Shown here: piece after piece, positions 2,200 to 63,008 of the stretch
Layout of the letters: each line of letters opens with the position of its first letter
Numbering within the stretch: the first letter of the stretch is position 1
Assembly (NCBI GenBank): GCA_051530055.1
Contig: CM121342.1
Span: forward strand, 13,655,480 to 13,719,479
Length of the DNA: 64,000 nt
Origin: Neoechinorhynchus agilis
Lineage: Eukaryota; Animalia; Acanthocephala
Reading direction: 5' to 3'
Translations under genes and position numbers: made by a program
Notes under the pieces: generated by a model
Told to the model about the DNA's origin: nothing
Database searches by the model: none
The model's input: only the letters and a program-made list of their open reading frames with translations

Positions 2200-2448
2200 A
2201 CAGAAACAAAATTAATTATGATGGTGAACTGACGGAAAAAATTATGAATATATTAATCAGAATTTTCGACCAATGCGTTGGTCTTCTTCAGTGATTGTTT
2301 TCGGATTTCTCGAACTTTCCTCCGAAAACAATCACTGAAGAAGACCAACGCATTGGTCGAAAATTCTGATTAATATATTCATAATTTTTTCCGTCAGTTC
2401 ACCATCATAATTAATTCCTAAATGAATATCTACACAGAAACAAAATTA
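2200..2448. mobile_element. Palindromic hammerhead-bearing mini-element (Penelope pLTR-derived fold-back) with 15-bp TSD
   Basis: Perfect inverted arms 2210-2305 / 2321-2416 with a 15-nt spacer. Direct repeat ACAGAAACAAAATTA at 2200-2214 and 2434-2448. Confidence 0.85.
2330..2371 (+). ncRNA. Minimal type I hammerhead ribozyme (mirror copy on - strand 2255-2296)
   Basis: AATCA-CTGAAGA-A-GACCAA(CGCA)TTGGTC-GAAA-AT-TC-TGATT: intact core, 6-bp stem II, 5-bp stem I, palindromic stem III (AATT), predicted cleavage after C2366. Confidence 0.9.
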
Positions 2449-2949
2449 CCGCAACGATGAAAACAGCCAAGAGAATCTATTCATCATTAGTCGCTAAAGT
2501 GTTTAAAATTTACACCATGGGTAACATTATCTTTCAAAAATAAAAAGATGAAATATTTCTCAAATGTAAATTTGATTTACGAAGTAACAATTGTTTTCCA
2601 GGTAAATGATCAGTGATAAAAATCTTTTCGTTTTTGAAAAGTACTGCATAATTTCCGTATTCATTGGATTGCACCTCAATAGAATTCATCTTAATTTATT
2701 TACATGTCTATTTTTTGTAATTCCGTGCTTGTACCCTTCAATTTTATTGGGTACGAGCGATATCGCACGCATTTTCGTTATCAAAGTTCATGAAATGCAG
2801 ACTTTTTCATTTTACGACAAAGAATTCAACACTTAAGAGAGCAAAAAAGAAAATGCGATCCAATTCAAAATTTCCAAATAGGTTGTCGAGAATAAATTAA
2901 GATTTTTATTTCAAAAGAGAATTAGTTCGATTGTCTTATAGCTTAATTT

Positions 2950-3588
2950 TTAGATGCTATCGAGCTTCTTCCACACCTCCTCCACCGAAGGTTGATTCTT
3001 GAAATATTCGTTTAGTTCTGGCAAGGCTTCGACTAATTTTCGATTCTCGGCAGCAAATTTGTCTTGTACTTTCTCTCGAATGAACATGTACACAGAACTA
3101 TAGAAACCATAGATGTATAGATCCGCATAAGTTAATTTATCCGTTATTATATGGCCTTTGTTGCCGTACAGACCGGCGAGTTTTTGAAGCGATTTGTCTA
3201 GATTAGGAAGTTCGTGTTTCGTGAATGCCAGCGCCCTTTCTTTTCGTCCTTCTTGTGAAGAATAGACTGTGCCAATGAATTTACCGAGATATTCGTCCAC
3301 GACACATAGAACAGCATCGCATCGAGCCGCATCGATATCGGTATTTCCACTTATTCCATGTTTTTCTCCTAAATAGCGAATAATCGCGCTTGTCTCGAAT
3401 AAAAGATCTTCGTTTACTTTGAGCACCGGGACTTTGTTCAATGGCATTTGGTTTTTGTATTTTCGGATCCATTCATCTTGGCCGAATCGAACATCCTTGA
3501 AATCCTGTCCGACCGCAGAAAGTGTGAGTCGGATCACCTCGGCTCGTCCTGGAAAGTCGAAGTAGTAGAGAACGTAGTTGGAAGGCAT
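2950..3588 (-). CDS. Glutathione S-transferase, sigma-class-like; intronless
   Basis: YVLYYFDFPGRAEVIR (catalytic Tyr), KVPVL, ETSAIIRYLG and KLTYADL motifs; 212 aa. Confidence 0.95.
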   Translation of the reverse strand: MPSNYVLYYFDFPGRAEVIRLTLSAVGQDFKDVRFGQDEWIRKYKNQMPLNKVPVLKVNEDLLFETSAIIRYLGEKHGISGNTDIDAARCDAVLCVVDEYLGKFIGTVYSSQEGRKERALAFTKHELPNLDKSLQKLAGLYGNKGHIITDKLTYADLYIYGFYSSVYMFIREKVQDKFAAENRKLVEALPELNEYFKNQPSVEEVWKKLDSI

Positions 3589-4101
3589 CGCTTATAATTG
3601 TACGAATCTTTCATAAAACTCGACTTTGTCATAAGTATAAATGAACGAAAGAGGTTGATTCACCGTTTTAAGCTTCACTTGCTAAACCCTTCGCTGAAAT
3701 GCCAAGTAAACTTTGACTCATTTGTGACACGTGTGATGATGCTTAAGCATCAAAAAGCAAAGAATTTCGACTACAAAATTACGCCGGGTTGTTCGATATC
3801 AAAAGTTCTAACTCAAGAATATTTCAATTTATATTGACCTCGTTGGTTAGAGCGATGTTCTTAGTAAAATTTGCTTAGAATAACAGAAATAATGATTTTA
3901 TTCAGTGTCGCAATAAAGCTTGCACTTAATGAACGTTTTTGGACAAAAGATTTCGCCGTAGTTTCGATTATTGCTCTAAATTTGATGCCCTTTCCGAAAG
4001 ATAATTAAAGCAAACTTTTTTAACATTTTTGTCAGCAATACAATGAATGCATAAGCGTTCGAGTTTTTAATCCGCAGATTTACAATCGTTTTGTAAACAG
4101 T

Positions 4102-4632
4102 TCACTTTGAAAAGTTTAATTTTAACCTTTTCGTTCTTAGCAGTCTTCGTTCATTGTCCCAATTTTGACTAAGTCTACGGATATGGCAGGAGGTGTTAAA
4201 AGTCTTTGTTTTCTTGCCCGTCGTCTGAAAAGTTTTATTGCCTCTAGATGATTCGTATTCTTTAATAATATCCATAATTTTGGGAGCTTCTTTGTTTGTA
4301 TTTGTCTTCGATTCGAGTAATTTCTTGTCCATATATTCCCAGACGGGCATTATCTCGTTTGGTTTTCTTACCAGAGTTTCCGAAATATAGTCACGATTGT
4401 AAAATGAATAATCTTTTTCGAAGAGACCAAAGCGCGTCGCTCACATTTTTCTTTTTTCGTCGTTTGCCACAAGTCTTGATAATCGGTTGTCTTCGCTCCA
4501 CCACGAATTATCCATATTATTCCGATTTTCCCAATAGTCATCTTGATGTCTTTTTAAGGCTTGGCAATATCGGCTAAACGTTTTAAGACTTTTATTTGCT
4601 CGCTCAAAGTGAAAACGTCTTCGGTTGTTCAT
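4102..4632 (-). CDS. Hypothetical protein, probably spliced (two ORF segments)
   Basis: ORFs 4441-4632 and 4102-4350 are on the same strand, separated by a short intron-sized gap. No family recognised. Confidence 0.4.
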
Positions 4633-4665
4633 CGTACACGATTATTTGCAGTGAGCAGTTATTTA

Positions 4666-6879: not shown

Positions 6880-6960
6880 CAAGAATTCGCTTGAATCAAC
6901 TATGCGATTTTATTCGCTTGCAAGAATTCGCTAGAGTCAAGAATACGATTTTATTCGCTT
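6880..6960. repeat. Imperfect ~41-bp tandem duplication
   Basis: CAAGAATTCGCT...CGATTTTATTCGCTT occurs twice in tandem. Confidence 0.8.
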
Positions 6961-9600: not shown

Positions 9601-10381
9601 TAGCGAAGGCCAAAAATCAATTGAAGGAACTTTTCGATAATAGGAACTTTCTTCTTAGTCACCATTTCTCTTATGTTGTCATCGTTATTACAAATGTTTC
9701 TGACGTTCAATTTGGACGTCTTGATGCTTTGTGAGGACCGCGAAAATTCTAAGAAGCAATGCACTTAAAAATGAAACGTAAATCGGTATGCAAAAGGTTT
9801 CAAAAACAATCAATGACTATATCTATTTTTAATGGCGTAATCTTGAATGTGGACGCTCGCATAGAAATACCATGTTGTTGCATACAAAAATCCTAAATAA
9901 GTATGTTAATTTCTTCGATAAAGGTGCAACTTCAACCGCCAAATGTATAATCTTAAAAGTCGGTCAGCGATTTAAAAAGTCTTAAAATTATTCAACGTTG
10001 TCTCAGAAACTTATAGAATCTCCAAAGAAGCGTTCATTTCCGATAAAATCAAATTGTGTTTCGCTAAAATAATCAGTGAATCTCAAAAGGTAAGTGATTT
10101 CCTTAACTGGGATCGCCAAAATTAATCTCGACCAATAAACGCGATAAGAGCAGAAGAAGTGATTTGGAGCCAATCAGTATGGCCATTTATTTTGAAAACT
10201 AAGGAAGGTGTTTATCGGCGAGATATTTTTTATTCCGCTATTTTTTTATCCCGATTTCAAAATAAAATTTCTGAATAATTCATATAAATGCTTTTAAAGT
10301 TTTTGAAATAAATAACTTCGATTTGTGAGTAGCATCCAAAGACGCTTACACAGACTGGATAAAAGATTAGGACTAGGATCG

Positions 10382-12013
10382 ATCTTTATTTTATATATTT
10401 TGACAATCGACCGGAACGAGACTTTTATTTTTATTTTTTATTTTGGTTGAGCTTTCGTCGTTTTACGACTTCGACAGGGCCGTCTAAAACACGAGGTGGA
10501 AAGATTATGCGAACTCACAATAACATCATGGACGTGGACAGTTCGTCGTCCTCATCCCTTGTTGAGCACCTTCACGAGTCACCCCTTTCGTCTCACGAGA
10601 GATCAGTAGAGCCTCCGCGATCGCCACATCCACCGGATCCAGGGCAATATACCTGATCTTCGTGGAAAGCGCAAATAATGCTCGGCCCACGGTGTAGTTT
10701 TGTGCGATGGCGCATTGTGGTTCAGCGTATTGCGGATGTGTTCAGTGACGCGTTTGTACAACGATCTTTCTGTTTTTCCGACATAGGAATACTTCCGATT
10801 GACATCTGCCTTGCATCGTTCGTACGAGATTTCATAAACGACGTTGTTACGGCCACATAGAGATATTCCCCCTCGTTCTCCCTTCTTGTCCCTGCATAAG
10901 CCGGACGAATACCTGCACATCATGCATGATTTTGGGAATTCAATAGACGATTCATGATGTCTTGTCCTCGTCAGTATTCGGTGCAAGGTGGGTGCATTTC
11001 GGTGTACTAAGCGTACATCCAGTCCCGACTTTTGCAGGAATAGTTTAACACCGCTCGTAAATTGCTCACTGACAAACGGTATCTTCAGAATCGGCTTGAG
11101 CTCGGACTGATTCTTGGTAAAAACCATCGCTTCCATGCTGATTTACCCTTTCTGAACGCATTTGAAGCCGATGATTTCTTCACTTGAATACCCATTATCA
11201 GCAAACAAATCATTGACCTTCTGAACTGCTGAACGTTTTGCATCGGATGATGAGCAACTTCGTGCGGTCTTATGCATCTGGGCGTAAATTGCCTGCTAAA
11301 TCACCCCGGGGTGATGGGAATCGCGATGCATAACTATTGCCTTCCGGCCGACAGATTGTCTTTAGTTACTTTTATTCGCCGTGTTGCATCCATCGAGTTC
11401 AACCGACGCTAAACGTCGCTCACTTGATCATCTTCTGTGTAGGTGAACAGAACATCATCCACATAGCGGAGGTAAATCTGACTCGACGCAGGAAAATGAC
11501 AACTAGGACGGGAGCTAAACTATTACCCATAGACAATCCGTGAATTTGTCGATAGAGGCGGTTCCCGTATTTAAAGAGGTTGCACTCTAGCACTACCCGT
11601 GTGAGATGAATCACATCGGCCGGCTGCATCCCAAAGAGATTGACCTCGTCTTTGAACTTGTGCAGCATCTTCTCCAGCGCTCTTATTGCTACGTTATTGT
11701 CCACGTTCGTATAGAGCGATTCAAAGTCAAAGGACATCACACGACCGGAGGCACTACTGATATCTCGTGAGACTAAAAGGGTGACTCGTGAAGATGCTCA
11801 ACAAGGGGATGAGGAAATAAGGGCACACCTCATCAATAAAAGAGACGAATTGCTTACATCCATGATGTTATTGTGAGTTCTCATAATCTTTCCACCTCGT
11901 GTTTTGGACGGCCCTGTCGAAGTCGTAAAACGACGAAAGCTCGGCCAAAATAAAATAAAAAAATAAAAATAATTCTCGTTCCGGTCGATTGTCAAAATAT
12001 ATAAAATAAAGAT
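10382..12013 (-). mobile_element. Decayed Penelope-like element (RT and GIY-YIG fragments) with ~235-265-bp inverted terminal arms
   Basis: SFDFESLYTNV and YRQIHGLSMGNSLAP (RT); VVYEIS...YVGKTERSLYKRVTEH (GIY-YIG). Arms 10382-10616 and 11747-12013 are reverse complements. Confidence 0.9.
11910..11946 (+). ncRNA. Hammerhead-like motif with variant core (mirror copy on - strand ~10445-10484)
   Basis: GGCC-CTGTCGA-A-GTCG(TAAAA)CGAC-GAAA-GC-TC-GGCC. Stems are intact; core position 6 is T instead of A. Confidence 0.65.
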
Positions 12014-12029
12014 TAATTTAACAGACTAG

Positions 12030-12800
12030 GGATAGTTAATTGCTTCTAACTAGTCAATATTCTCGGAGCAGGTCCTGAAAGCACAATAATTATAATTAAC
12101 GGGATTGTTCTGATCATAATCCCCCAGATAAAACCTATTTTATTGAGATATTTCACGAGAAAACCTTTACCACCATTCCATATCTATCATCCCGAACGAT
12201 TTTCTCTCGATGATTAGATCTAATGTTAAAATTTCCAAAAGGTATACAACAGTTTATAATCTTTTCGACAAACAATAATTTTTATTTGTGAATACCAAAA
12301 ATCATCATATTGAACGCTAGAAGTATCATGGGTTCAATTTTTGCAAGCCTGAGCAGTATTGTGCATTCCGTCCACCGCTAATAATTGTTTCTTTGGTGTC
12401 TACATCCTTTTTAATGTTTTCCAAGATGCGCATCGCATATTGGAATTTAAAAAATTCATTCCTGTACTCAGCTGATGTTTTCTTAAGGATTTTTATGACT
12501 TCGTAAATTGGGAAATTATTGTTTATTTTTAGAATCGAGCAAGGCGTGGTCACATCTCTTGTGTATATAACATTTTTAAGGTAGCCTTTTTGGCATGGAT
12601 TTCCATTTAAGGAGAAAAATGGAATCCCGTGCTTTATAATAAACATAATCGCATACGAAATCTACATTTGCATGCCCAATCATAAAAAAGTCACGCTGCG
12701 CTTTCATGTGAGAGTGAATTCGAAATTTCCTTCCGCATCTGTCTTTGCTATCGATCACAATTTTCAAAGAGATGATTATTGTGATTATTAGCGTACGTTT
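12030..12800 (-). pseudogene. Highly decayed coding remnant, possibly an HUH endonuclease/SF3 helicase (Rep-like) of viral or transposon origin
   Basis: RIHSHM and DYVYYK lie upstream of a frameshifted DRYG-NGGKGFLVKYL Walker-A-like segment; several stops. Confidence 0.3.
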
Positions 12801-15647: not shown

Positions 15648-16547
15648 TTTTTGCCAGGAGCGTAGCAGCCAATAGCTAAGCGAGCGGGTTGTTGTTTGTG
15701 TTCTGAGTGGCGAACTGAAGAGAGAGAGCGAGACACTATAGGCGGTGTGCGTACGTCGAAATGTGACGGTGAATTCGGCAAGTGTAAACGTAGCCCAGAG
15801 GAACAAAGTCAACTCATACACGCTGCTTAGAAATGGGCTTTGTATAGGTTTAGGGATGCGTTAAATCAATCACGGTGAGTGGTTCTCTGTAAATACCAAC
15901 TTGTTCATATCGTATTCGGAAGATTGACGCATTCGTAAACAACAACACAAATGTGTAAGACGGGATTTCTTCACGCTGTTCTGTGTTGGTCGATGCGAAG
16001 TAGAACGGAAATCAATTACGTAAATGGCACACTAGAAGATATCTACGGTCACTTGCCCTCTCTAAATGCCTAAGACGGGAAAGAGTGCTTCTCAAACGAT
16101 GCAAGTAATTTCGTCCTTTGATCCAACCAAAAGACGTAACTATATGAACGATGTACTTTAGTTCACGAACCAACGAATTCTCGCAATATCTAGACCGAAC
16201 ATTGAGAATAAGACTTCGCGATGATTAGTAACCTTCAAGTACACATAGTCTAAGTTTATCAACACTAGGTGACCCTTTTGTTTCTAGGAAAGGCCTAAAT
16301 AAAACGCTCAACAATTCAAAGCATTCATTTTTATTGTGACATTGGGAATGTGAGCCGTGCGTTAAGAATAAATCCTCGTTTTCGATTTTATTTGGAAAAA
16401 TATTGGCAAAAATTTTGCTTCACAAGGCAAAAAAGAATGGACGAAGCCAAGAAAATTTGCGCTGGATGCAACTCACGGATACAAAGAGCGGTATGCTATA
16501 ACCAAGTATGATGATTTATTGCTTTTTTTGAAGATTGAATTGCCCAT

Positions 16548-16720
16548 GCTTTTTATGGCAGAAAATTTGAAACAATTTATTAAGTCCGATATTTCGGCAG
16601 AATATTGTGCCTTTATCAAGGTTGCTTGTGAGTAACTCACAGACGACCTTGATATAGGCAAAATGTTGTGCCGAAATATCGCACTTAATAAATTCCTTCA
16701 AATTTTTCGTCATAAAGAAC
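16548..16720. repeat. 85-bp-arm imperfect fold-back with degenerate hammerhead motif
   Basis: Arms 16548-16632 / 16636-16720 with a 3-nt loop. TTGATA(A/T)-A-GGCA(8 nt)TGCC-GAAA-TA-TC occurs in both arms. Confidence 0.8.
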
Positions 16721-17947
16721 ATTTATTGGTTTACATAATGACAATTTTAATTGAACTCGTTATGTGGATAAAACCTTACGGAGATAGCGATTATTCTCTT
16801 CGTGATTTCATATTCAACAAAATGCTCTTAGATGGCATAATTAAAATTCTAGCGTAATTTTTGCAATTGTGCAAAATTCATTATTGTGTGACGGCAAGCA
16901 ACGATTATAAACTTCATGATTATATACGAGAGATGCATGTAGTCTTTATCCAAAGAATCGCCCGCAATAAATGTTTACGACACTTTGCCTTATAATGATT
17001 ATATAATTGAAAACAGTACCAACTCTTCATATCAAAATTTGTTGCAATTTCTTCGAACGGAGAAATTAATTTAGAAACGAAATAGCATTATTGGCTACCC
17101 AAATAAGCTTCCAACGAATCACATTTATAGACGTGAAAAGCTGTTATGTCGTAAAACCGAAACTGATTTTTATTTGTGGCATATTTTATCAGACACTATG
17201 AAATAGATATTTTGCATGTAAATATCATTTTGATTCCTAAAAGTTCTTGTTTCTCCCAGATTCCATCATTTATCGCATAAGGTGAAATTACGTATAATTT
17301 CTATTGAAGCAAAGAAACTTGGGCGAATTTGAGGATATTGATCAGTACGTAGGTGGCTGAAAAGTCAAAAGAGCCAATGCCGGAGACGTGAGACATTTAA
17401 AACCAGTAAACTACTGCTTGTATTTACTACGTTTTACGAAAAAATGCAACTGTGCAACCCCCCCAAAACGTTAGTTGATTTTGAATAAAAAAACCCACAA
17501 AATTGGACTTGCGACTCATATAACCATGCAACCACTGCTTCTTTCGCGCTCTTGGAATAAGATAGAACGTCAAATCGTTGGGGAATTAATAGTTAGCATT
17601 CATGTTCAATCATAGCTAAAAATCAACCTTGAATCCAAAAGCTAAATTGTACTTAATAAGCTAGGTGATGTAAATGTATCCGTGAACGATCTTCTCGACA
17701 AGATCTTAGAGTATTCAGGTGCGAACAAGCGACCGAAAATCATTATATCATATTTCGAAGTTTTTCGCCGCCGAACTGCTAAAATCAAACGCAAATTGAT
17801 AAAAGTTAAGAAAAAATAACCTTAACCGTGGAATGAATTCGACTAATCTAAGAAAAGTGAAATGTGATGACTTCGATACAAAGGTAAACTTCATAGAATT
17901 CCCACAAAGTACGTTAAGTTATGCATCTTCATAATGCAAACGCTATT

Positions 17948-19989: not shown

Positions 19990-22900
19990 ATTAATCCCAT
20001 CAAATCGCTCTATTCAAATACAATTCCGCGCTGCCCATCGTCGACCCGCTAAACAAAATCACAACGCCTACAAACCTCTCGGCCTTGCGATCGTTTTTTG
20101 TTGTCCATACTAAAACCACTGAAAACATCCAACGACCGAATCCTTTGCGATTATAATAAAAATCCATTCCATAAAATCGTTTTATTAAAATTCAATTCTG
20201 CGCTGTCTATCGTCGGCCCGCTAAACAAAATCACAACGCCTACAAACCTCTCGGCTTTGCGATCGATTTTTTGTTGTCCGTACAAAAACAACTGAAAAGA
20301 TCCGACGACCGAATCCTTTACGATTATAATAAAAATCCATTCCATAAAATCGCTTTATTCAAATTCAATTCTGCGCTGACTATCGTCGGCCCGCTAAACA
20401 AAATCACAACGCCTACAAACCTCTCGGCTTTGCGATCGATTTTTTGTTGTCCGTACAAAAACAACTGAAAAGATCCGACGACCGAATCCTTTACGATTAT
20501 AATATTAATCCATTCCATAAAATCGCTTTATTCAAATTCAATTCTGCGCTGACTATCGTCGGCCCGCTAAACAAAATCACAACGCCTACAAACCTCTCGG
20601 CTTTGCGATCGATTTTTTGTTGTCCGTACAAAAACAACTGAGAAGATACGACGACTGAATCCTTTACGATTATAACAAAAATCCATTCCATAAAATCGCT
20701 TTATTAAATTCCAATTCCACGCAGTCAATAGTCGACCTGCAACATCAAATCGCAAAACTTACAAACCTCTCGACTTTGCGATCGATTTTTTGTTGTCCGT
20801 ACAAAAACAACAGAAAAGATCCGACGACCGAATCCTTTACGATTATAATAAAAATCCATTCCATAAAATCGCTTTATTCAAATTCAATTCTGCGCTGACT
20901 ATCGTCGGCCCGCTAAACAAAATCACAACGCCTACAAACCTCTCGGCTTTGCGATCGATTTTTTGTTGTCCGTACAAAAACAACTGAGAAGATCCGACGA
21001 CCGAATCCTTTACGATTATAATAAAAATCCATTCCATAAAATCGCTTTATTCAAATTCAATTCTGCGCTGTCTATCGTCGGCCCGCTAAACAAAATCACA
21101 ACGCCTACAAACCTCTCGGCTTTGCGATCGATTTTTTGTTGTCCCTACTAAAACAACTGAGAAGATCCGACGACCGAATCCTTTACGATTATAATAAAAA
21201 TCCATTCCATAAAATCGCTTTATTAAAATTCAATTCTGCGCTGTCTATCGTCGGCCCGCTAAACAAAATCACAACGCCTACAAACCTCTCGGCTTTGCGA
21301 TCGATTTTTTGTTGTCCGTACAAAAACAACTGAGAAGATCCGACGACCGAATCCTTTACGATTATAATAAAAATCCATTCCATAAAATCGCTTTATTCAA
21401 ATTCAATTCTGCGCTGTCTATCGTCGGCCCGCTAAACAAAATCACAACGCCTACAAACCTCTCGGCTTTGCGATCGATTTTTTGTTGTCCCTACTCAAAC
21501 AACTTAGAAGATCCGGCGACCAAATCCTTTACGATTATAATAAAAATCCATTCCATAAAATCGCTTTATTAAAATTCAATTCTGCGCTGACTATCGTCGG
21601 CCCGCTAAACAAAATCACAACGCCTACAAACCTCTCGGCTTTGCGATCGATTTTTTGTTGTCCGTACTAAAACAACTTAGAAGATCCGGCGACCAAATCC
21701 TTTACGATTATAATAAAAATCCATTCCATAAAATCGCTTTATTAAAATTCAATTCTGCGCTGACTATCGTCGGCCCGCTAAACAAAATCACAACGCCTAC
21801 AAACCTCTCGGCTTTGCGATCGATTTTTTGTTGTCCGTACAAAAACAACTGAGAAGATCCGACGACCGAATCCTTTACGATTATAATAAAAATCCATTCC
21901 ATAAAATCGCTTTATTCAAATTCGATTCTGCGCTGACTATCGTCGGCCCGCTAAACAAAATCACAACGCCTACAAACCTCTCGGCTTTGCGATCGATTTT
22001 TTGTTGTCCCTACTCAAACAACTTAGAAGATCCGGTGACCAAATCCTTTACGATTATAATAAAAATCCATTCCATAAAATCGCTTCATTAAAATCCAATT
22101 CCGCGCTGACTATCGTCGGCCCGCTACACCAAATCACAACGCCTACAAACCTCTCGGCTTTGCGTTCGATTTTTTGTTGTCCGTACATAAACAACTGAGA
22201 ATATCCGACGACCGAATCCTTTACGATTATAATAAAAATCCATTCCATAAAATCGCTTTATTCAAATTCAATTCTGCGCTGTCTATCGTCGGCCCGCTAA
22301 ACAAAATCACAACGCCTACAAAAACCTCTCGGCTATGCGATCGATTTTTTGTTGTCCGTACAAAAAGAACTGAGAAGGTCCGACTACCGAATCCTATTCG
22401 ATTATAATAAAAATCCATTCCATAAAATCGCTTTATTCAAATTCAATTCTGCGCTGTCTATCGTCGGCCCGCTAAACAAAATCACAACGCCTACAAACCT
22501 CTCGGCTTTGCGATCGATTTTTTGTTGTCCCTACTCAAACAACTTAGAAGATCCGGCGACCACATAATTTACGATTATAATAAAAATCCATTCCATATAA
22601 TCGCTTTATTAAAATTCAATTCTGCGCTGACTATCGTCGGCCCGCTAAACAAAATCACAACGCCTACAAACCTCTCGGCTTTGCGATCGATTTTTTGTTG
22701 TCCGTACAAAAACAACTGAAAAGATCCGACGACCGAATCCTTTACGACTATAATAAAAATCCATTCTATAACATCGCTTTATTAAAATCCAATTCCGCGC
22801 TGTCTATCATCGGCCCGCTACACCAACTCGAAACACTTACAAACTTCTCGGCTTTGCGATCGATTTTTTGTTGCCGTACTAAAACAACTGAAAAGATCCG

Positions 22901-25900
22901 ACGACCGAATCCTTTACGATTATAATAAAAATCCATTCCATAAAATCGCTTTATTCAAATTCAATTCTGCGCTGTCTATCGTCGGCCCGCTAAACAAAAT
23001 CACAACGCCTACAAACCTCTCGGCTTTGCGATCGATTTTTTGTTGTCCGTACAAAAACAACTGAGAATATCCGACGACCGAATCCTTTACGGTTATAATA
23101 AAAATCCATTCCATAAAATCGCTTTATTCAAATTCAATTCTGCGCTGTCTATCGTCGGCCCGCTAAACAAAATCACAACGCCTACAAACCTCTCGGCTTT
23201 GCGATCGATTTTTTGTTGTCCCTACTCAAACAACTTAGAAGATCCGGTGACCAAATCCTTTACGATTATAATAAAAATCCATTCCATAAAATCGCTTCAT
23301 TAAAATCCAATTCCGCGCTGACTATCGTCGGCCCGCTACACCAAATCACAACGCCTACAAACCTCTCGGCTTTGCGATCGATTTTTTGTTGTCCGTACAA
23401 AAACAACTGAGAATATCCGACGACCGAATCCTTTACGATTATAATAAAAATCCATTCCATAAAATCGCTTTATTCAAATTCGATTCTGCGCTGACTATCG
23501 TCGGCCCGCTAAACAAAATCACAACGCCTACAAAAACCTCTCGGCTATGCGATCGATTTTTTGTTGTCCGTACAAAAAGAACTGAGAAGGTCCGACTACC
23601 GAATCCTATTCGATTATAATAAAAATCCATTCCATAAAATCGCTTTATTCAAATTCAATTCTGCGCTGTCTATCGTCGGCCCGCTAAACAAAATCACAAC
23701 GCCTACAAACCTCTCGGCTTTGCGATCGATTTTTTGTTGTCCCTACTCAAACAACTTAGAAGATCCGGCGACCACATAATTTACGATTATAATAAAAATC
23801 CATTCCATAAAATCGCTTTATTAAAATTCAATTCTGCGCTGACTATCGTCGGCCCGCTAAACAAAATCACAACGCCTACAAACCTCTCGGCTTTGCGATC
23901 GATTTTTTGTTGTCCCTACTCAAACAACTTAGAAGATCCGGCGACCACATAATTTACGATTATAATAAAAATCCATTCCATATAATCGCTTTATTAAAAT
24001 TCAATTCTGCGCTGACTATCGTCGGCCCGCTAAACAAAATCACAACGCCTACAAACCTCTCGGCTTTGCGATCGATTTTTTGTTGTCCGTACAAAAACAA
24101 CTGAAAAGATCCGACGACCGAATCCTTTACGACTATAATAAAAATCCATTCTATAACATCGCTTTATTAAAATCCAATTCCGCGCTGTCTATCATCGGCC
24201 CGCTACACCAACTCGAAACACTTACAAACTTCTCGGCTTTGCGATCGATTTTTTGTTGCCGTACTAAAACAACTGAAAAGATCCGACGACCGAATCCTTT
24301 ACGATTATAATAAAAATCCATTCCATAAAATCGCTTTATTCAAATTCAATTCTGCGCTGTCTATCGTCGGCCCGCTAAACAAAATCACAACGCCTACAAA
24401 CCTCTCGGCTTTGCGATCGATTTTTTGTTGTCCGTACAAAAACAACTGAGAATATCCGACGACCGAATCCTTTACGGTTATAATAAAAATCCATTCCATA
24501 AAATCGCTTTATTCAAATTCAATTCTGCGCTGTCTATCGTCGGCCCGCTAAACAAAATCACAACGCCTACAAACCTCTCGGCTTTGCGATCGATTTTTTG
24601 TTGTCCCTACTCAAACAACTTAGAAGATCCGGCGACCAAATCCTTTACGATTATAATAAAAATCCATTCCATAAAATCGCTTTATTAAAATTCAATTCTG
24701 CGCTGACTATCGTCGGCCCGCTAAACAAAATCACAACGCCTACAAACCTCTCGGCTTTGCGATCGATTTTTTGTTGTCCCTACTCAAACAACTTAGAAGA
24801 TCCGGCGACCAAATCCTTTACGATTATAATAAAAATCCATTCCATAAAATCGCTTTATTAAAATTCAATTCTGCGCTGACTATCGTCGGCCCGCTAAACA
24901 AAATCACAACGCCTACAAACCTCTCGGCTTTGCGATCGATTTTTTGTTGTCCGTACAAAAACAACTGAGAAGATCCGACGACCGAATCCTTTACGATTAT
25001 AATAAAAATCCATTCCATAAAATCGCTTTATTCAAATTCAATTCTGCGCTGACTATCGTCGGCCCGCTAAACAAAATCACAACGCCTACAAACCTCTCGG
25101 CTTTGCGATCGATTTTTTGTTGTCCGTACAAAAACAACTGAGAAGATCCGACGACCGAATCCTTTACGATTATAATAAAAATCCATTCCATAAAATCGCT
25201 TTATTAAAATCCAATTCCGCGCTGTCTATCGTCGGCCCGCTACACCAAATCACAACGCCTACAAACCTCTCGGCTTTGCGATCGATTTTTTGTTGCCGTA
25301 CTAAAACAACTGAAAAGATCCGACGACCGAATCCTTTACGATTATAATAAAAATCCATTCCATAAAATCGCTTTATTCAAATTCAATTCTGCGCTGTCTA
25401 TCGTCGGCCCGCTAAACAAAATCACAACGCCTACAAACCTCTCGGCTTTGCGATCGATTTTTTGTTGTCCGTACAAAAACAACTGAGAAGATCCGACGAC
25501 CGAATCCTTTACGATTATAATAAAAATCCATTCCATAAAATCGCTTTATTCAAATTCAATTCTGCGCTGTCTATCGTCGGCCCGCTAAACAAAATCACAA
25601 CGCCTACAAACCTCTCGGCTTTGCGATCGATTTTTTGTTGTCCCTACTCAAACAACTTAGAAGATCCGGTGACCAAATCCTTTACGATTATAATAAAAAT
25701 CCATTCCATAAAATCGCTTCATTAAAATCCAATTCCGCGCTGACTATCGTCGGCCCGCTACACCAAATCACAACGCCTACAAACCTCTCGGCTTTGCGAT
25801 CGATTTTTTGTTGTCCGTACAAAAACAACTGAGAAGATCCGACGACCGAATCCTTTACGATTATAATAAAAATCCATTCCATAAAATCGCTTTATTCAAA

Positions 25901-40057: not shown

Positions 40058-40103
40058 TATTGAAATATTTCGTCCAATCACGATGGACTTCTTCAGTCAA
40101 TTA
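40058..40103 (-). ncRNA. Minimal type I hammerhead ribozyme (3' pLTR copy, sense to the GIY-YIG ORF)
   Basis: Reverse strand reads AATTGA-CTGAAGA-A-GTCCA(TCGTGAT)TGGAC-GAAA-TA-TT-TCAAT. Confidence 0.85.
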
Positions 40104-40988: not shown

Positions 40989-41035
40989 TAATTGACTGAA
41001 GAAGTCCAGTGTGATTGGACGAAATATTTCAATTA
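40989..41035 (+). ncRNA. Minimal type I hammerhead ribozyme
   Basis: TAATTGA-CTGAAGA-A-GTCCA(GTGTGAT)TGGAC-GAAA-TA-TT-TCAATTA: intact core, 7-bp stem I, palindromic stem III (ATAT). Confidence 0.88.
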
Positions 41036-41476
41036 AAGTGATTCTTGGATATATAATTTGTTTCCCCACCGCCACATACTCATGGATTTTATCTTTAACC
41101 ACCAAAGCAATACACTCAATGAAAACTGATCTGATTCTGCAATTTGAGACCATTTTCTTATTGTTTCCTCAGTGGGTAAAACTGAAAGATGAGAAAAGTA
41201 AGTGTTACATTCGTCGTCGGCCTCTCTCGTCGTCGACCGTCATCCATCACGAGGACCAAGAACAAAATAAAATAAAACGTGTTATTGAACTTGTTTATAT
41301 CCTTCATGATAACATTCGGGTGAAAAGCAATCCTCTTGTGGCGATTCATACCCCGAGACCTGCAAGTCGGTTTAGGAAATTTTGTGCCTATCACAATGTC
41401 AATATTAAGTGATGATTGATCTTAATTAAAAATTGCAAGTAAAAAAATTTGATTAAAAAAATTCAACATACAAGAT

Positions 41477-49300: not shown

Positions 49301-52300
49301 TCTTAGATCGATATCGTAAAGATTAATTGAAAGGGCTCGCGCTCGACTCCTTAATTCTGGAAATACTTGTTTAAACAAAATGTCGCGTTCATTTTGCATA
49401 TCCAAAAATGTTGACGAGACAAATATTCGAACGTTACGCCATCTTGGTAAATCGGGAAAATGTCTTACTAACTCATTTTCAGTAAATAAATCTTCCTCCT
49501 TCAGTCCTTCAACCAATCCGAACTCTTGATCAATTTTATTGACCCGTTTCACTTGTGACTCTACATCTCGATCCGATAAATATCTTGAATAAACAAGTGA
49601 GAATCGAAACATAAAATCACAAAAAATACCTCAGTACTTTCTCAGATGCGCCTACAATGAATATATCATTCTTGGTGGTAGTTGGAAGCCCATTAACGTT
49701 AGAAAGAAAAAGGTTCATTGACAAAAGGTTAGAATTTTGAACTTGTCTATAATAGTCGATTGCTGCTTTGGTGGCGCTATACAAATCTAACGATTCCGAT
49801 ATTGTAACAATATTGTCAAGTTTCTATACATTTACATGTTATCGCTATCTTTAAGAAATGGAGAATACTTTGCATTCATTGTAAGGTGAAGCGAATTCCG
49901 TAACATATCCTCCATAATTTGATTTACCTCCTCCATGAATTTTGCACTCAATTTCTTCATTGCTATCCGAATAATCACTAACGTCAGATTCATCACTTTT
50001 CGAACTTGATTCGCTAGTGGATGTATCAACTTCTTTTTCTTCGTCCTTTTCGCTGTTTTCGGTTGATTCGCTACTGGATGTATCAACTTCTTTTTCCTCG
50101 CCCTTTTCGCTTTTTTCGGTTGAATCGCTACTGGATGTATCAACTTCTTTTTCTTCGTCCTTTGCGCTGTTTTCGGTTGATTCGCTACTGGATGTATCAA
50201 CTTCCTTTTCTTCGCCCTTTTCGATTTTTTCGATTGATTTATCTGGATACTTCGATGTACATTCACTTTGAAATTCCTTAATGATATATTTCCTGAGTTC
50301 GTTAATCACTTCAAGGTCCAATCGTGAACTATTGATTTCTATAATAGATAATGATTTTCCTCTGTAGAATAAAACCAGATCGCATATTTCGCATCGATAA
50401 TAAATAATTAAGGCTGACAGCACCTCCATCATCTCCTAAATCACAAAATAAAGCAACAAAATAAAGTGAAGTGACATATATAAATGCACTTTTCGAATCT
50501 CTTTTGAACCAAATTTCTAAAACTTAAAAATAGAAGATTTCGATGGAATATTTCATTTGTTATTATAACCGCGTTAAAATTCTTATTATTCGGTTTAAAG
50601 GTAATGTCAAGAATAAGCTAACGTATTATGCGCTGTGGGTATTCTACTTATAGAACATTAAATTATATTCCACAACCAAAAACGAAGGAAATGTTTTGCA
50701 GTTAAAACAGAAATATTTTATAACAGATTTTCAATCCCGCATAATTGCTTTTACAATTAAGTATAAGGCAGACGACCTAAAAATCGATATTAAAATATTT
50801 TAAGAGCCATCCGCATTATTTCTCAATGATGTACTGCTGTAGGATTCACGTATTGAAAAACTATTTAGAATATTATAAAAATGCATGTATTTTTATGTTG
50901 TCTATGTTCTGAAATGTATTATAATTTTGTACCTTCGAAGTTTTAGTTTCATGTCGTATTGTCGTCTTTTCATCAACTTTTGGATTAACGATATTCTCCA
51001 CGTCGACGATTACAATAGTTTTTCCCGGAATGACTGGAACGTCGTTTTCAACTGAAATTGAAAGCGCTTCAGATAATGCCATTTGCAATTGTTCATTGTA
51101 CTGGCGCCTATTGAAAAATTAAAACGTCCTATTGAATTTAAATACTTACCACTTGGGATTTTCGCTATAGCGACCAGAGTCCTCATATTGTTTTTTTAAT
51201 GCCATGTAAGCCTGATAAAATTGTTGCGGAAATTGTCTCGATTTTTTTACTTGCTCCTAACACACGCCATAAATGCACTTCAACGAGCTATTTTCTTACC
51301 TCATCTTTTATGATATTAATAACTTTAACAAAATGTTGATTGGATATTTTCTTATCTACAAGGTTTCGCAAGTTTCGAATTAGCGCCATGTAAGCAACCG
51401 CATTTTTGTCTATAGAAAGATAATAAGTAAAACACTTTTAGTAAATAGTATTTACCTAAAAGATTTTCCCATACATTAGCAGAGTTGCCATTTAAGCTTA
51501 ATTCTCTTTCCCAGGTGACTATCGGGTCGAATTTAATTTTTTTACCGGCCAATGATTCATCGAATTCGCCTGGTAACTCTGATGCAATGAATTCGTCGAC
51601 ATTTGATGGATATCTTTAGCAATTTAAGGGATAGTAGTTAACTTGAATAAAAGATAAGAAAAGCGCACCTTGCTTGAACAACTTTCATTACCTTATCTCT
51701 TGGGTACTTGATGTGTAATACCTTTACAGCGGTTTTCATCGTTAAGTTCTTCGCTTGTTTGTTTCGTCCTTCAATCATCTTTGGTATTCTTGCCAATGAT
51801 TTGTATTTCTCTATGAAACAAATATGAGAAGATGCAATTTATAAATAATGAAAAATTACGAAGGTGGAAATCGGAAAATTGTCCGAACTTTAGTTTCATT
51901 ACTTTAACCAAGCATTTTGGAATTGCTGCCTTTCCGCTTATTGCCTATTGCAGCAAATAACTTATTATGACAAAGACGAATTTTATTCGACGATTGATTG
52001 CGTTCTCAGTTAAGAGGTAATATTTGCAACGTAGTTTACGCAAATTGAGTATTTAAAGTGAATTTTAAAATTCAAACTTATTATTGGATATTTATTCGTA
52101 AATTTCCTTTTATAAATAGAGAAGGCCACAATTTCGTAAATTGCAACCTTGAAACCTATAAAATAAAGTTTTTAGAATTAATTTTTTGATAATGCTTTCA
52201 GCATAACCACAGAATTACAAGAAAAATGCATCGAAGTAAAATATATTAACGGAGAATAAAATCAATCATTAGATGTATAAATGCTAATTACTTTGTAAAA

Positions 52301-57703: not shown

Positions 57704-60700
57704 TTATTTAACTGAAAATGTTGAAGATGAGTTTCGTTCTTCGCTTCTCTGTTGATGCTGATACGGCATCGGTTGTGGTTGTGATGCCCGTAGGTCGCTC
57801 TGAGAACTAAAAGCTGCCGGAACCGTAGATGGGTATTGTCCTTTAATGCTTTGTGGAGTCATGTATTGGTAGGCCGGATCCGGATGGCTGTTTATAGGTG
57901 CTCCAGTTGACTCATAGATGGGTAACGAGGGTTGCATCGGTGGATGTGGCATTGGCTGCTGATACATGTATTGAAAATTTTGCGGGTATAGTGCAGGTTT
58001 ATGAGGATTGGGATGACTACTGTCTTGCGGATAATGGTGGTTGCTGTAATGAGCCGGATACTGTTGAGGGTGTTGTAAATGTCCACCGAGTTCATATTGA
58101 GGGTCACCTATAAGTAAAAGCCATTACGCTTACCTCTTACAATTAGTTTCATTGTGGACATGGGATTTAAAGCAGGATAAAATCTGGAAATTATATGTTA
58201 CGAACGTCAAAAATGAATCATTTTCTGTATAACTCGTTCAAAAAAAACCTAAAATGAAATTTTTGTTAAAGACAAAAGCGCTAAATTAACGTTATCCCAA
58301 ACCAGTTTCAAACTCGTAAACCATGGCGTTATTTTTTTACTTACCGTGAAGGTAGATATGATTATAATAGTTTTCATTCGCATAATCCTTCGCATGATGC
58401 GATACTGTTCCCTGGAATGATGTGAATGAACCCATGGGATAGTATTTAAAGAAGTCCCATTACTTCGTATGTATGACTATCAAGAGATCCAGACCTTTTA
58501 TAAAGACGCAGGAATTCATCCATGCTAACTAAATTGTCTTTGTCTTCATCATACTAAAATCATCGAATGCAAGCAATAAAAAAAAGACGAAAACCTACAA
58601 ATCGCATGAACTCTTCGCGCATCCGATTGGCTTCCTCGTTTCTTTCAACATGATCGATGCCACTCGTGGAATTGAACGTATTGTCAATCTACAAAACGTA
58701 TAAATTCTTAACGTTAAAGAGCACAATAGATTACCTCCTTCTCAAATAAGGCGGTAACTTCGTTTGCGTCTAAATACCCATTCCCGTCGATATCTTAAGA
58801 TAGGAACTATCGAATTAAAAGTTAAGTGTAGATGGACCTATTGTATTGTGCCATTCAAAAGTGAAGCCACAGTGCCGAACAAGCTCATTTTCCCTTGAGC
58901 GTACTTCTAAATATGCTTTTCTCGGATATATGCTTTTATACTCATCCTATGTTGTTCTGATAAAAATTACTGTTAAGAGGCATTCATTATTTTATCATAA
59001 GAAATGGCAATCAAGTTTTCAATACCTCACTCAAATTGCACTTTTTAAGTGAGGAATTTTACTAAAAAGGTAGCTATCAATCAACTTTTTCTCTATGAAT
59101 CTCATTTCGAATTTTAAATAGGCAAAACAACTTCAGCCGCCACTTGCAGTTATAAAGTTTATGTTGACACGCAAAAAGTATCCTGTTATTAAGGGCTCGT
59201 TTATCGTGGCGTCTTTATAGTCGAATTCCAATGTTTGAAAAAACAAACCATGAAGCTTAAAGAAAGTAAGCGGATCGAAATGTTCAGGCTCCAGATTATC
59301 CATTTCTTGCCAAACTTTATTCAGTTGCTTTTTGCTTCCCTATGAAGTAAAGATTAAAAGGTCGTAAAATGGACGAGATATATCAAATATCTAACGGGTG
59401 GATCGAATTTAGTACTTTCAGCCACTTGCTTCATTAGCGATCTCCGTTGTTCAATCAACTCTTTCTGTTTATCAGGTTTCAAATGCTTCAATTAATTTGT
59501 GAAATTGAACGTGTTCAAAACGCAAAATTCACCCTAATACTTTTCAAGAACTTCTCGTGTTTGTGGTGCTCATAAACTTCAAAGGCAGCACGCCGGCGAC
59601 GGTCGATCTCATTTAAATCGTGACTTGCTCTTAATAAGAGTTTTCTCAGGTCCTTTTCTCCAAAAGTATCCCTTCGACTTTTCTTCCAATCTAGATATCC
59701 ATACTTCGATTTTTTTAATGTACCTATCAGACAAAAGGTATTGTGAAAATGTCGATATGTGAGGTACCGGGGAATGTGATTGGGATTATTGCTTAGGTCT
59801 ATACCCTGTAAATGATTATTTATTAAAGACGTTTCGAACCTCATCGGGTTCATCATCAGTTCTAAAATACAAGTGGATACGTCTTTAATAAGTAATCATT
59901 TACCGGGTGTAGACCTAAACAATAATTCCCAAAAGCATTGTGCTCTTTTCCAAGACAATACATCCTTATACCTCGAATACTTGATCGCGTCCCTAGAAAT
60001 GATGGATGGAGGTTATTAAGTGTAGAAGATGTGTTGAAATTAAGGATTTAAAAAATTTAAGAATAACATTTTGACCAATTTAATTGCATAAACTTCAAGC
60101 AAAATAGGATTTTCGATAAAAGTATAGTTGAGCCTATGGGAATCTTAGGTCTAGGACACAATCTGTTTTCCTTTTTATTCACAAAAATGCGTATTTAAAT
60201 AGATTTTTCATGTATCTGAAATTTTAACTGCTGCAGAACTACAATTTATCCAGACAGAATGTTTCCAATGGGTGTTCTGCTAATAATTCAAAGTATCGAC
60301 ATGACTTTTGTATATATTTCTAATTATATCGACATGTGAGATACCGGGGTTATATGATTAGAATTATTGTTTAGGTCTTCATCCGGTAAATGTTTTTTAA
60401 AGACGTTCTGCTAATTTCGTCGGGTTCAGCATCATTTTTTTAGTTACTAAAATACGCTCCTTTTAATATCTAACAAGCTGATAATGAATCCGAATTACCT
60501 AAACAATAATTCTAATTATATTTTTTTTTGTGACGGAACACTTGAAATATTTTATTAGGTGGCACAATATTGTGCCGATATATCCGACCTAGTAAATTAC
60601 TTCAAATTTTTCACTAACGTAAGATGTGTTATTCTTCGGAAATCTACATGCCATAGTTTACGTTGTTACCTAATAGTATAGATTGTTTGGAATCCGAAAT

Positions 60701-61325
60701 TGGATAAAATTGTTCAAAGGCTTCGAATTCGCATAAATTCAATTTTTTGATGTATTCCATGATTCTATATTCAGGTTAGTAAAAAGAATTATAATGCCAA
60801 TTTAGAGTTTAAAAACATCTTCGTTATTAAGTATCCAGATAAGCCTTGATTCTACTAGCGCTTAGAAAATGTACCTTTTAAAATTTTCTTCACTTTCTGT
60901 ATTTCCCGCTGCTTAGCTTCATCGAGCCAACTTCGGACATCGGAAGGCAGATTTTCCATTATGTAAGAAGTAGTGTTGCTGTTCAGAGACTGTAGGGGAA
61001 CTGAAATTTTTGTCGATTAAACTACTGCTCCCAAATTTACCCTAAATCCTTTATCCTCGATTTCCTCAAAGACGTCCTTTAACCTTTCTATCGCTGTTAT
61101 ATTCTCGTACACTTGGTTTAGATATTCAACATAAGACAGCTTGTCGAGCTAAATATTATTTTTAACTTTTACATATATTTGAAAAACGCATTGTACAATG
61201 TCGTTTGTTTCGTCCTTGTAATCACTCGGATTGTAAAATTTATCAAGTTCTTCGCTGAGTTGTTTTGCATCATCGAAAGTCCATAACATTGCCAGTAAAA
61301 GCAAAGCAATTGGTGATTGAATCAT
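57704..61325 (-). CDS. NUCB: Nucleobindin (NUCB1/2-like EF-hand Ca-binding protein), multi-exon, with Q/P/H-rich C-terminus
   Basis: Signal peptide MIQSPIALLLLAML; YVEYLNQV; SDVRSWLDEAKQREI; DLRKLLLRASHDL...FEVYE; GSKKQLNKVWQEMDNLEPEHFDPLTFFKLH|DIDGNGYLDANEVTALFEKE; second EF loop DEDKDNLVSMDEF. Confidence 0.9.
59782..59930. mobile_element. Intronic fold-back element (50-bp inverted arms enclosing a hammerhead core), Penelope pLTR-like
   Basis: 59782-59831 is the reverse complement of 59880-59930. A diverged sibling copy lies at ~60330-60516. Confidence 0.8.
59823..59865 (-). ncRNA. Minimal type I hammerhead ribozyme, sense to nucleobindin pre-mRNA
   Basis: TTAGAA-CTGATGA-T-GAACC(CGATGA)GGTTC-GAAA-CG-TC-TTTAA: canonical core, GUC triplet, palindromic ACGT stem III, weak stem I. 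Confidence 0.82.
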
Positions 61326-61432
61326 TGGTGGCGGGTTTTGCTGTTTAGTGGAAATTCGAAAGCAAGAGCATAAAACGAAAACAGAGTGTATCCAAGCTGG
61401 TGCTGCATTCTTTGAGTACTGTCATAAGAACA

Positions 61433-62113
61433 TTAAATCTCTTCGCGCAGATTGAAGTTGCTGCAAACTATTTCGATCACCTTTATTAATGGCAGATTGA
61501 TGGTACGTTTTGATTGCATTAAAAATTCCTTAAGATTATTCCGCGTTCTTAAAGATCTGAATATATTTCGGCATAAGATATTGATCCTCAAGAAATCACC
61601 TATCTGCTCGAAAAGCAACGAAAACCGTCGATATAGAAAATCGCCGCTCTAAAATATCTTGTTTTTTGCTTTTGTGACTTTGTTTACAAACTTTGCGGTG
61701 CATTGATTGACCTAATCTACCATTATAAATTTTTCGCCATTGTGCTTATCCGAAAATTGTTTAAATTCATAAATTGTTTTATTAAAATTCGACCCAAGTG
61801 CCGGTTTAAATCTCGAATTCCTCTTCCTTAACAGAATTGGATGTGCTAACGGAAGTCTGATCAGACTTAGAATCGATTATATCCTTCACATTTTGTTTAG
61901 CGAAGTGCGCACCCTTAAAAACATTCACAAGTGAAAGTGTGGCATTCAAAGACTTTTCTTCATTTAAATGAGAATCATTATCGCACGGAACGAGAATTCG
62001 TTTTGGCATTCCTTTTGCAATTGAGGACCAGGGTACATCTAAAAACCCAAACTATTGCATTCAATACGTCGAAAAGACAAACCTTCAACATACATTCTGA
62101 CCGAATATGGCAT
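61433..62113 (-). CDS. Spliced hypothetical protein directly upstream of nucleobindin
   Basis: ATG at 62113, then MPYSVRMYVE|DVPWSSIAKGMPKRIL across a clean ~44-nt GT-AG intron. Downstream exon structure is uncertain. Confidence 0.5.
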
Positions 62114-62509
62114 CGTAGCTTAGATTGAATCGAAAACGGAACGTGAAAAGTTTGCCATGGTAACCAAATTAGGAATATTCATGATAAGTAGAAGAGTTTA
62201 GGCCGAGGTAGTATTGATTGCAAAATTCAGCAGATATTTATTTTACCTATTTTAATTACAATGTTAAACATATGAATAATATATTTGGCATGAACTATGT
62301 CTTCACAGCTGATTGATTGGGTGATCACTAAGCTACCAAGCTGTATGTTCATCGTTCTTATGCTTTCTTAAAGGTTTCCTTGAGTTGTAACTTTGTTACA
62401 TTATTGATTCACTCCTTTGGTTTATAATGTTTTTCTCCTGTTCTTTGGATTCATGCCTTTGAAGAGATTGATAGTTGATTCCTTCATAAAATTATCAGTT
62501 TTAATCACA

Positions 62510-63008
62510 TTATCGATAAGTATAAGATGACTATTTTTTTATCATACACGGCTGGATTATGGACATACAGTCCATCGATTTCTGTCTGGGAAACGCTGAT
62601 CGGCGCTCAATGCCCTTGACAGTACAGTTATAAGTTTGTAAGAATCACCCCGGATCCTCAAATATCTCCCGAAAAGGCGCGACTCATCAGTGGGTTTCCC
62701 CTTCCCTTCAACGAGGTATTTCGTCCCCTTCGGTTGTGGGTCATCGGCGATAATGGTTTTTGAACTCTTTGACCCTGAAATCAACGATCGCCGATGATCA
62801 TCAACCGAAGGGGATGAAATACCGCTGAAGGGAGGAAACTCACTGATGAGTACCAACTCTTCGGGAGATATTTGAGGATCCTGAGGGATGTACAAACTTA
62901 TAACTGTACGGTGATGAGCATTGAGCGCAGATCAGCGTCTCCGGGCCGAAATCGATCCATAATTCAGCCGTGTATGGTAAAAAATAGTCATTTTATACTT
63001 ATCGATAA
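62510..63008. repeat. ~500-bp imperfect fold-back (arms ~220-240 bp) with degenerate hammerhead-like cores
   Basis: TTATCGATAAGTATAA... at the left end is the reverse complement of the right end; ~35-nt central loop. CCGATGA...GGGA(C/T)GAAATA and CTGATGAG occur in both arms. Confidence 0.85.

Follow-up and report, generated by a model that had tools for sequence, protein, structure and literature searches.

We analyzed 64,000 nt from the acanthocephalan Neoechinorhynchus agilis (GCA_051530055.1, contig CM121342.1, positions 13,655,480 to 13,719,479, forward strand), a stretch hereafter called the window, for which an initial annotation had described six insertions with inverted arms as hammerhead-bearing derivatives of Penelope-like elements (PLEs). 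All coordinates below are positions in this 64-kb window. The six inverted-arm loci are designated el1 to el6, and el5b, el3c and el3d are further family copies in the window. An inverted-repeat search of the window recovered all six loci at the coordinates at which they had been annotated:

2210-2305 and 2321-2416, arms of el1: 100% identity (96/96) with a 15-nt spacer, a perfect palindrome; the insertion spans 2215-2433 (219 bp) and has a 17-nt tail (2417-2433) at its right end only.
10382-12013, minus strand, el2: arms 10382-10617 and 11746-12013, 82% identity (81.7%) with gaps.
16546-16633 and 16635-16722, arms of el3: 83% identity (83.0%) with a 1-nt spacer; the insertion spans 16522-16720 and has a 24-nt tail on the left (16522-16545).
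40018-41075, minus strand, el4: arms 40018-40201 and 40891-41075, 88% identity (87.6%).
59746-59929, minus strand, el5: arms 59782-59835 and 59876-59929, 89% identity (88.9%).
62510-63008, el6: a 0.5-kb palindrome with arms of about 250 nt (62510-62760 and 62778-63008), 80% identity (79.7%) and a 17-nt spacer.

Comparison within the window revealed no DNA similarity between the families, and the fall in arm identity from 100% to approximately 80% is consistent with elements of different age. Both observations agree with the earlier view that these are separate families of different ages.

Two of the loci, el2 and el4, retain coding remnants, which were assigned by Pfam family scans and by their nearest Atlas clusters:

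10606-11142, minus strand, GIY-YIG-type endonuclease remnant of el2: nearest Atlas clusters GIY-YIG (0.95), Pfam GIY-YIG match below threshold.
11412-11758, minus strand, reverse transcriptase (RT) remnant of el2: motifs FDFESLYTN (A), GLSMGNSLAPV (B) and YVDD (C); a frameshift separates B from C.
40171-40731, minus strand, GIY-YIG endonuclease remnant of el4: Pfam PF01541 (E = 2.6e-6; 28.1 bits, cutoff 22.6), nearest Atlas clusters GIY-YIG (0.95-0.96).

The RT remnant is a short piece without a Pfam match, and its nearest Atlas clusters are rotifer/eukaryote RVT_1 (0.93-0.95). In el2, the endonuclease remnant lies 3' of the RT remnant, both on the minus strand, and the endonuclease stop codon (10603-10605) is located 12 nt within the left arm. 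Since the 3' end of the open reading frame (ORF) faces the left arm in both el2 and el4, the left arm corresponds to the sense 3' end. Thus, el2 pairs a 5'-truncated minus-strand copy (10382 to approximately 11745) with a second, inverted copy of the 3' end that measures 268 nt (11746-12013), and in el4 a 5'-truncated minus-strand copy (40018 to approximately 40890) is joined to 185 nt of its 3' end in inverted form (40891-41075). The right arms contain, in inverted orientation, the last 12-31 nt of the ORF and the 3' untranslated region, joined at the 5' truncation point. The RT and GIY-YIG remnants of el2 and the GIY-YIG remnant of el4, in the predicted orientation, support the proposed derivation from PLEs. 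The left arm had also been proposed to be the sense 3' pseudo-long terminal repeat (pLTR) and the right arm its inverted copy; the orientation was found as proposed in el2 and el4, but "pLTR" is loose wording, as no direct repeat was found in either element. A BLASTP comparison of the two endonucleases aligned only a Y-[VI]-G-x-T ... EH patch, which indicates that the el2 and el4 families are distant. Using tblastn with the protein pieces of el2 and el4, we detected no further PLE coding remnant in the window.

The flanks of the elements carry direct repeats, which we evaluated against a null drawn from the non-satellite part of the window, because a 173-bp satellite had inflated a first null:

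2200-2214 and 2434-2448, target-site duplication of el1: 15 bp, empirical P < 2e-4, 17-nt tail.
10346-10361 and 12018-12034, flanking direct repeat of el2: imperfect, 16-17 nt, P = 0.025.
16514-16521 and 16721-16728, target-site duplication of el3: 8-12 bp, P = 0.04, 24-nt tail.
59732-59745 and 59930-59942, target-site duplication of el5: imperfect, 13-14 bp, P = 0.11 alone, 36-nt tail.
62485-62511 and 63030-63055, flanking repeat of el6: imperfect, approximately 21-27 nt, P = 0.004, 21-30-nt tail on the right.

Combined over the elements, the flanking direct repeats yielded P = 5.5e-6. The el1 15-mer has just these two occurrences in the window, and the last 5 nt of its left copy overlap the arm as microhomology. 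In el2, the palindrome is separated from its left flanking repeat by approximately 20 nt (10362-10381) and from the right one by 4 nt. For el4, no significant target-site duplication was detected (P = 0.79); the sole candidate is the 6-bp sequence AATACA, combined with a right-hand tail of 33 nt. The tails, 17-36 nt in length, are present on one side only. Genomic reads were examined over 1,901 nt around el1. Hundreds of them end at 2435/2436, showing that the el1 tail is the true 3' end of the family and that the other arm was primed approximately 20 nt further in. Variable-length duplications together with one-sided tails are the signature of retrotransposition and not of a transposon with terminal inverted repeats.

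All six elements had been said to carry a hammerhead core, one extra nucleotide, stem II, GAAA and a 2-nt palindromic stem III. The bare heptamer CTGANGA occurs in the window at chance level (30 versus 27.7 expected), and Rfam models (types I, II and III, HH9, HH10) detected no hammerhead in the window, whether the gathering threshold was applied or E values up to 10 were admitted; therefore, the full descriptor was needed to test the claim. The Rfam models probably miss these motifs because they presumably expect helix III to be closed and stem II to follow without a bulge. Our strict descriptor comprised CTGANGA, 0-2 extra nt, a stem II of at least 4 bp, GAAA, a 2-nt palindrome, U, non-G and a helix I of at least 3 bp, and it was compared with dinucleotide-preserving shuffles (n = 200). 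It matched five sites, two each in el1 and el4 (one per arm) and one in a single arm of el5, and none in the 200 shuffles. A broader descriptor (helix III of any type, at most one extra nt, C3-G8 or U3-A8 core) found the same five sites (0.03 expected). When position 6 was free to vary, seven matches were obtained (0.017 expected), the gain being both el2 arms, and a search for the U3-A8 core yielded a single match, in the left arm of el3 (0.037 expected). The motifs are as follows:

2330-2371, plus strand, minimal hammerhead of el1: helix I AATCA/TGATT, CTGAAGA, unpaired A, stem II GACCAA/TTGGTC, GAAA, AT, U, C17 at 2366.
2255-2296, minus strand, mirror hammerhead of el1.
11906-11950, plus strand, hammerhead-like motif of el2: CTGTCGA (A6 to U), stem II GTCGT/ACGAC, GAAA, GC, UC, helix I GGCC/GGCC.
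10441-10485, minus strand, counterpart motif of el2, without helix I.
16580-16627, minus strand, U3-A8 variant of el3: TTGATAA, unpaired A, stem II GGCA/TGCC, GAAA, TA, UC, weak helix I.
16641-16688, plus strand, right-arm motif of el3, with an additional A9-to-U change.
40988-41036, plus strand, minimal hammerhead of el4: helix I AATTGA/TCAATT, CTGAAGA, unpaired A, stem II GTCCA/TGGAC, GAAA, TA, UU.
40056-40104, minus strand, mirror hammerhead of el4.
59820-59867, minus strand, single minimal hammerhead of el5: CTGATGA, unpaired T, stem II GAACC/GGTTC, GAAA, CG, UC, helix I of 3 bp.

Every descriptor match has exactly one unpaired nucleotide before stem II, although 0-2 were allowed, and in all of them stem II is closed by a G-C pair (G10.1-C11.1) and GAAA is followed by AT, TA, CG or GC. 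The conserved cores CUGANGA and GAAA and the H17 position are present in el1, el4 and el5. In both arms of el2 the core is CUGUCGA (A6 to U) and the remaining motif is intact; as judged from the sequence, this ribozyme is probably dead, the altered core not being a described active variant. In el6, both arms have GAGA in place of GAAA, a stem II of at least 3 bp was not found in the right arm, and a very tolerant descriptor matched shuffled arms in one third of the trials, so that its motif is no better than chance. Furthermore, every hammerhead motif found reads outward, as had been proposed.

The pairing pattern was compared between the families. In helices I and II, 83% of the cells are paired, compared with 58% after shuffling (0/500 as high) and 15-39% when the partners were slid. 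Compensatory changes occur at five pairs, with a covariation score of 0.487 versus 0.126 for shuffled sequences (0/500 as high), the structure having been read from these same sequences. A covariance model built from el1 to el4 (seven sequences) recovered its training sequences only and neither el5 nor el6; it was over-fitted and gives no independent support. We conclude that five of the six elements have good support for the hammerhead motif, which is intact in three of them (el1, el4 and el5). The initial annotation was thus mostly right on observation, with the exception of the el6 hammerhead: el2 and el3 carry variants of the annotated motif, and when set against shuffled sequence, el1 to el5 score above chance by descriptor counts and el6 does not.

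Rfam microRNA (miRNA)-precursor models of plants and insects matched the palindromes at 2240-2386, 16583-16684, 59807-59904 and 62719-62819 below the gathering threshold. The matched models include MIR7504 (E = 1e-10). All four were rejected as shape matches, which could lead automated miRNA annotation astray.

Additional copies of two families are located in the window:

60330-60521, minus strand, el5b: a second insertion of the el5 family with a decayed hammerhead and an inverted arm of 25 nt (60352-60376 and 60497-60521).
60561-60612, plus strand, el3c: a solo, decayed 3' part of the el3 family with no inverted partner.
2066-2142, minus strand, el3d: a solo, decayed 3' part of the el3 family, whose terminal segment (2076-2110) is multi-copy in the genomic reads.

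El5b, an independent insertion, lies 400 bp from el5 and is oriented alike. It carries a 12-bp target-site duplication of its own, TTCTAATTATAT, present at 60318 and 60510 and nowhere else in the window, and its inversion junction is a different one. The sense copy of el5 is the minus strand of 59746-59875, including the 36-nt tail (59746-59781), and its inverted arm (59876-59929) ends 8 nt upstream of where its own cleavage site would be. The two elements part right after a shared upstream segment, and their inverted arms measure 54 and 25 nt, respectively. Similarly, the reads of the el1 family revealed at least six distinct joints between opposite strands, each at approximately single-copy depth. 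Together, the differing junctions of el5 and el5b and the several inverted joints of the el1 family indicate that the junctions are made anew at insertion. The centre of el1 is itself at approximately single-copy depth, and an Illumina-derived contig spans 2276-2350 without differences; thus, the palindrome is no assembly artefact.

Inversion had been put forward as the normal integration outcome. Approximately seven inverted insertions in the window (the six plus el5b), compared with two solo copies (el3c and el3d) and one unclassifiable fragment, are in line with this, but the solo copies and the reads of the el1 family are not: approximately 640 of these reads lie at tandem joints and approximately 40 at inverted joints. 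In the approximately 640 reads, position 2435 is followed by CATAA and then by 2386, which shows that the terminal 50-55 nt of the el1 family are tandemly repeated elsewhere in the genome. The consensus sequences of loose-end reads chain into a unit of approximately 95 nt. Inversion is therefore common, but it is not the only insertion outcome.

We interpret the loci as insertion scars of several unrelated PLE families and their short derivatives, in which two copies were joined head to head, and we assign this reading a probability of about 80%. It starts from what the sequences show: how the elements are built and oriented, which coding remnants they retain, their duplications and tails, the statistics of the motif, and junctions that vary between copies of one family. 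A protein with RT and GIY-YIG endonuclease activities would make a staggered cut in both target strands, giving rise to a target-site duplication of variable length. Each of the exposed 3'-OH ends would then serve as a primer for reverse transcription of the element RNA in its 3' region, one at the very end of the RNA, thereby keeping the 17-36-nt tail, and the other slightly further in. The two complementary DNAs (cDNAs) would grow toward each other, stop early (5' truncation) and be joined head to head. This scheme predicts that the 3' end of each arm faces outward, as seen. The minimal hammerhead, approximately 42-71 nt from the 3' end of the element, would be carried outward in every arm long enough, and the surviving coding sequence would be set only by the stop point of the longer copy. 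The differing stop points would account for the series from el2 (RT and endonuclease) via el4 (endonuclease only) to the palindromes el1, el3 and el6. In L1 twin priming, the second target strand reportedly primes a second cDNA, which results in an inverted 5' segment and one target-site duplication. The inverted L1 segment is more 5' and forms no palindrome, whereas here both arms represent the same 3'-terminal region.

The two-strand priming and the joining step are extrapolated from published in vitro work with a lizard PLE: the PLE protein of an Anolis element cleaves and extends both target strands in vitro and initiates internally (Frangieh et al. 2024, PMC11167929). This activity would supply a mechanism for two outward 3' ends and a one-sided tail, which we read from sequence.

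Several points weigh against this interpretation. Two-strand priming is carried over from a vertebrate element to an acanthocephalan. Pfam recognized neither the RT nor the endonuclease of el2, and the RT is a putative member of the PLE/TERT-related clade. El6 has neither a hammerhead nor a coding remnant, and only its insertion signature points to a PLE origin. El4 is without a significant target-site duplication, and that of el5 is weak when taken alone. Finally, the near-equal arms of el1, el3 and el6, with spacers of 15, 1 and 17 nt, are unexpected under independent truncation and hint at snap-back synthesis or at a short template with a fixed 5' end.

Much of the architecture has been described for PLEs. 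Known features (PMC8557442) include an inverted copy, truncated at its 5' end, next to the unit, a tail of 30-40 bp at one of the ends, and pLTRs that contain hammerheads. The present loci resemble such complex insertions (Evgen'ev and Arkhipova 2005; Craig et al. 2021, PMC8557442) in the inverted, 5'-truncated second copy at the 5' end, in the unit flanked by inverted repeats with a one-sided tail, in the hammerhead near the 3' end and in the GIY-YIG domain C-terminal to the RT. They differ in that el2 and el4 lack a direct (tandem) pLTR, in the somewhat shorter tails (17-36 nt) and in that most copies here are so truncated that two 3' ends remain. Among the features of endonuclease-containing PLEs, we found the GIY-YIG endonuclease 3' of the RT, the second, 5'-truncated (inverted) copy and the variable duplication with a one-sided tail.

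Likewise, minimal hammerhead ribozymes (min-HHRs) are characterized by an unpaired nucleotide between A9 and 10.1, a G10.1-C11.1 pair and palindromic positions 15.2-16.2 (Cervera and de la Pena 2014, PMC4209133). The same study found a 2-nt palindromic helix III in D. virilis and rotifers, U3-A8 covariation, motifs that are extremely diverse within a single genome, dual min-HHRs on opposite strands at distances of approximately 100-700 bp, and poor in vitro cleavage by PLE min-HHRs. Taken together, the motifs of the present loci show the unpaired nucleotide, the G-C pair and the palindrome, a short helix I and a long helix II, high sequence diversity, the U3-A8 variant and opposite-strand pairs. 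In comparison, the host, an acanthocephalan, is new, and the A6-to-U core of el2 is not among the variants described as active; spacers of 1-15 nt are not discussed in that study (PMC4209133). Thus, the suggestion that this set deserves study as something new is not borne out, since earlier publications already cover how the motif is built, the inverted twin arrangement, the tail on one side and a connection to small interfering RNAs (siRNAs).

Animal retrozymes are head-to-tail hammerhead repeats that represent non-autonomous PLE derivatives and can give rise to circular RNAs (bioRxiv 10.64898/2026.07.22.740005; Cervera and de la Pena 2020). They are similar to our loci in being short, non-coding, PLE-derived sequences with type-I hammerheads. 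However, the six loci are head-to-head pairs, and tandem joints of the el1 segment were found only elsewhere in the genome. The window also contains tandem repeats. One is the 173-bp satellite at 19997-27245, a 7.2-kb array of approximately 42 copies with 93% matches and a strong C-over-G skew (GC skew -0.33); neither strand of its unit contains a hammerhead core or GAAA. Another, at 50006-50239, has a 57-bp unit in 4.1 copies with 90% matches.

The palindromes el1, el3 and el6 could also have originated from a single cDNA that folded back and copied itself, either by snap-back or by a template switch onto the nascent strand. The spacers of just 15, 1 and 17 nt are in favor of such a route, as are 10 nt (2321-2330 and their mirror) that are common to both el1 arms and, according to the loose-end reads, absent from most family copies. 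However, it gives no account of el2, el4, el5 and el5b, in which the inverted 3'-terminal region joins a distant 5' truncation point. Moreover, the el1 arms end at different 3' positions, the tail is one-sided, and the flanks are a direct rather than an inverted duplication. We regard this route as a less likely origin of the three palindromes.

Another explanation is that the palindromes are non-autonomous fold-back retroelements copied as whole units, the inversion being inherited from a master copy. Indeed, el5 and el5b are alike in layout (tail, arm, hammerhead and inverted end) and near in length while having different target-site duplications, and the near-equal arms of el1, el3 and el6 would also fit. 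Against this, the junctions of el5 and el5b differ (inverted arms of 54 versus 25 nt), solo copies exist in the el3 family, and the el1-family reads show many different inverted junctions, the el1 centre being at approximately single-copy depth. Whole-unit copying is therefore unlikely.

The boundaries of the short palindromes leave room for a more special origin. The arms of el1 and el3, which belong to unrelated families, both end (at 2321 and 16635) exactly 46 nt upstream of C17, and the longer copy of el5 ends at most 48 nt upstream of C17. In 143 reads that match el1 from 2331 rightward, the innermost 25 nt are replaced by a common sequence ending in GTGTGTTTCAG (TTTCAG). The switch at 2331 is located exactly at the 5' end of helix I and resembles a 3' splice site. 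El1 may be derived from a spliced or variant RNA, and its TTTCAG boundary recalls the intron boundary described for Penelope of D. virilis (PMC4209133). In view of the common 46-nt arm end of el1 and el3, the spacers of 1-17 nt and the TTTCAG-ending reads, we keep a small chance for a dedicated route by which el1, el3 and el6 would be formed, either from an RNA with a fixed 5' end approximately 46 nt upstream of the cleavage site copied from both strands or by snap-back, their hairpins then serving as siRNA sources that police PLEs in this lineage of parasites.

Co-option of the palindromes, whether by the host or by the elements themselves, as siRNA-source hairpins or working ribozyme loci is very unlikely. 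The predicted hairpins are very stable, siRNAs have been mapped to inverted repeats of Penelope in transformed D. melanogaster (Evgen'ev 2013, PMC3681739), and small-RNA data have been reported for N. agilis (PMC12256650). On the other hand, the decay of the arms from 100% to approximately 80% identity is roughly neutral-looking, the cores of el2, el3 and el5b are mutated, and the hairpin would mask the ribozyme.

The notion that the loci are miniature inverted-repeat transposons (MITEs) or Foldback-type DNA transposons with terminal inverted repeats and coincidental hammerhead motifs is highly improbable and already largely refuted: it draws on the inverted-repeat shape, on the Rfam search, which yielded hairpins and no hammerhead, and on the chance-level occurrence of CTGANGA alone, but the complete motif greatly exceeds chance expectation and shows covariation, RT or GIY-YIG remnants lie in the predicted orientation inside el2 and el4, arm length varies within a family, and instead of a fixed-length duplication abutting both arms and no retroelement coding, we found duplications of variable length, which the tail separates from one arm.

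Returning to the interpretation as head-to-head PLE insertion scars, a transcript of a whole palindrome is predicted to fold into a very stable hairpin (-157 kcal/mol for el1, for example), which, according to the predicted fold, would out-compete that of the ribozyme. In addition, helix III of this ribozyme type can form only with a further copy oriented the same way. Because of the hairpin masking, the need for a same-orientation partner and the mutated cores of el2, el3 and el5b, we consider the hammerheads of these loci inherited baggage. The palindromes may also produce small RNAs.

In outline, the initial annotation was also right in its interpretation. The loci are a real feature of known architecture and represent no new class of element or ribozyme. 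For annotation, this means that the palindromes should be masked as PLE debris and be taken neither for miRNA or hairpin genes, despite the matches to plant miRNA models in Rfam, nor for MITEs. For the biology of PLEs, the loci are clean natural examples of the proposed two-sided priming, with one duplication, two outward 3' ends and a one-sided tail, and the within-family pairs with different junctions support a mechanism that has so far been shown in vitro only.

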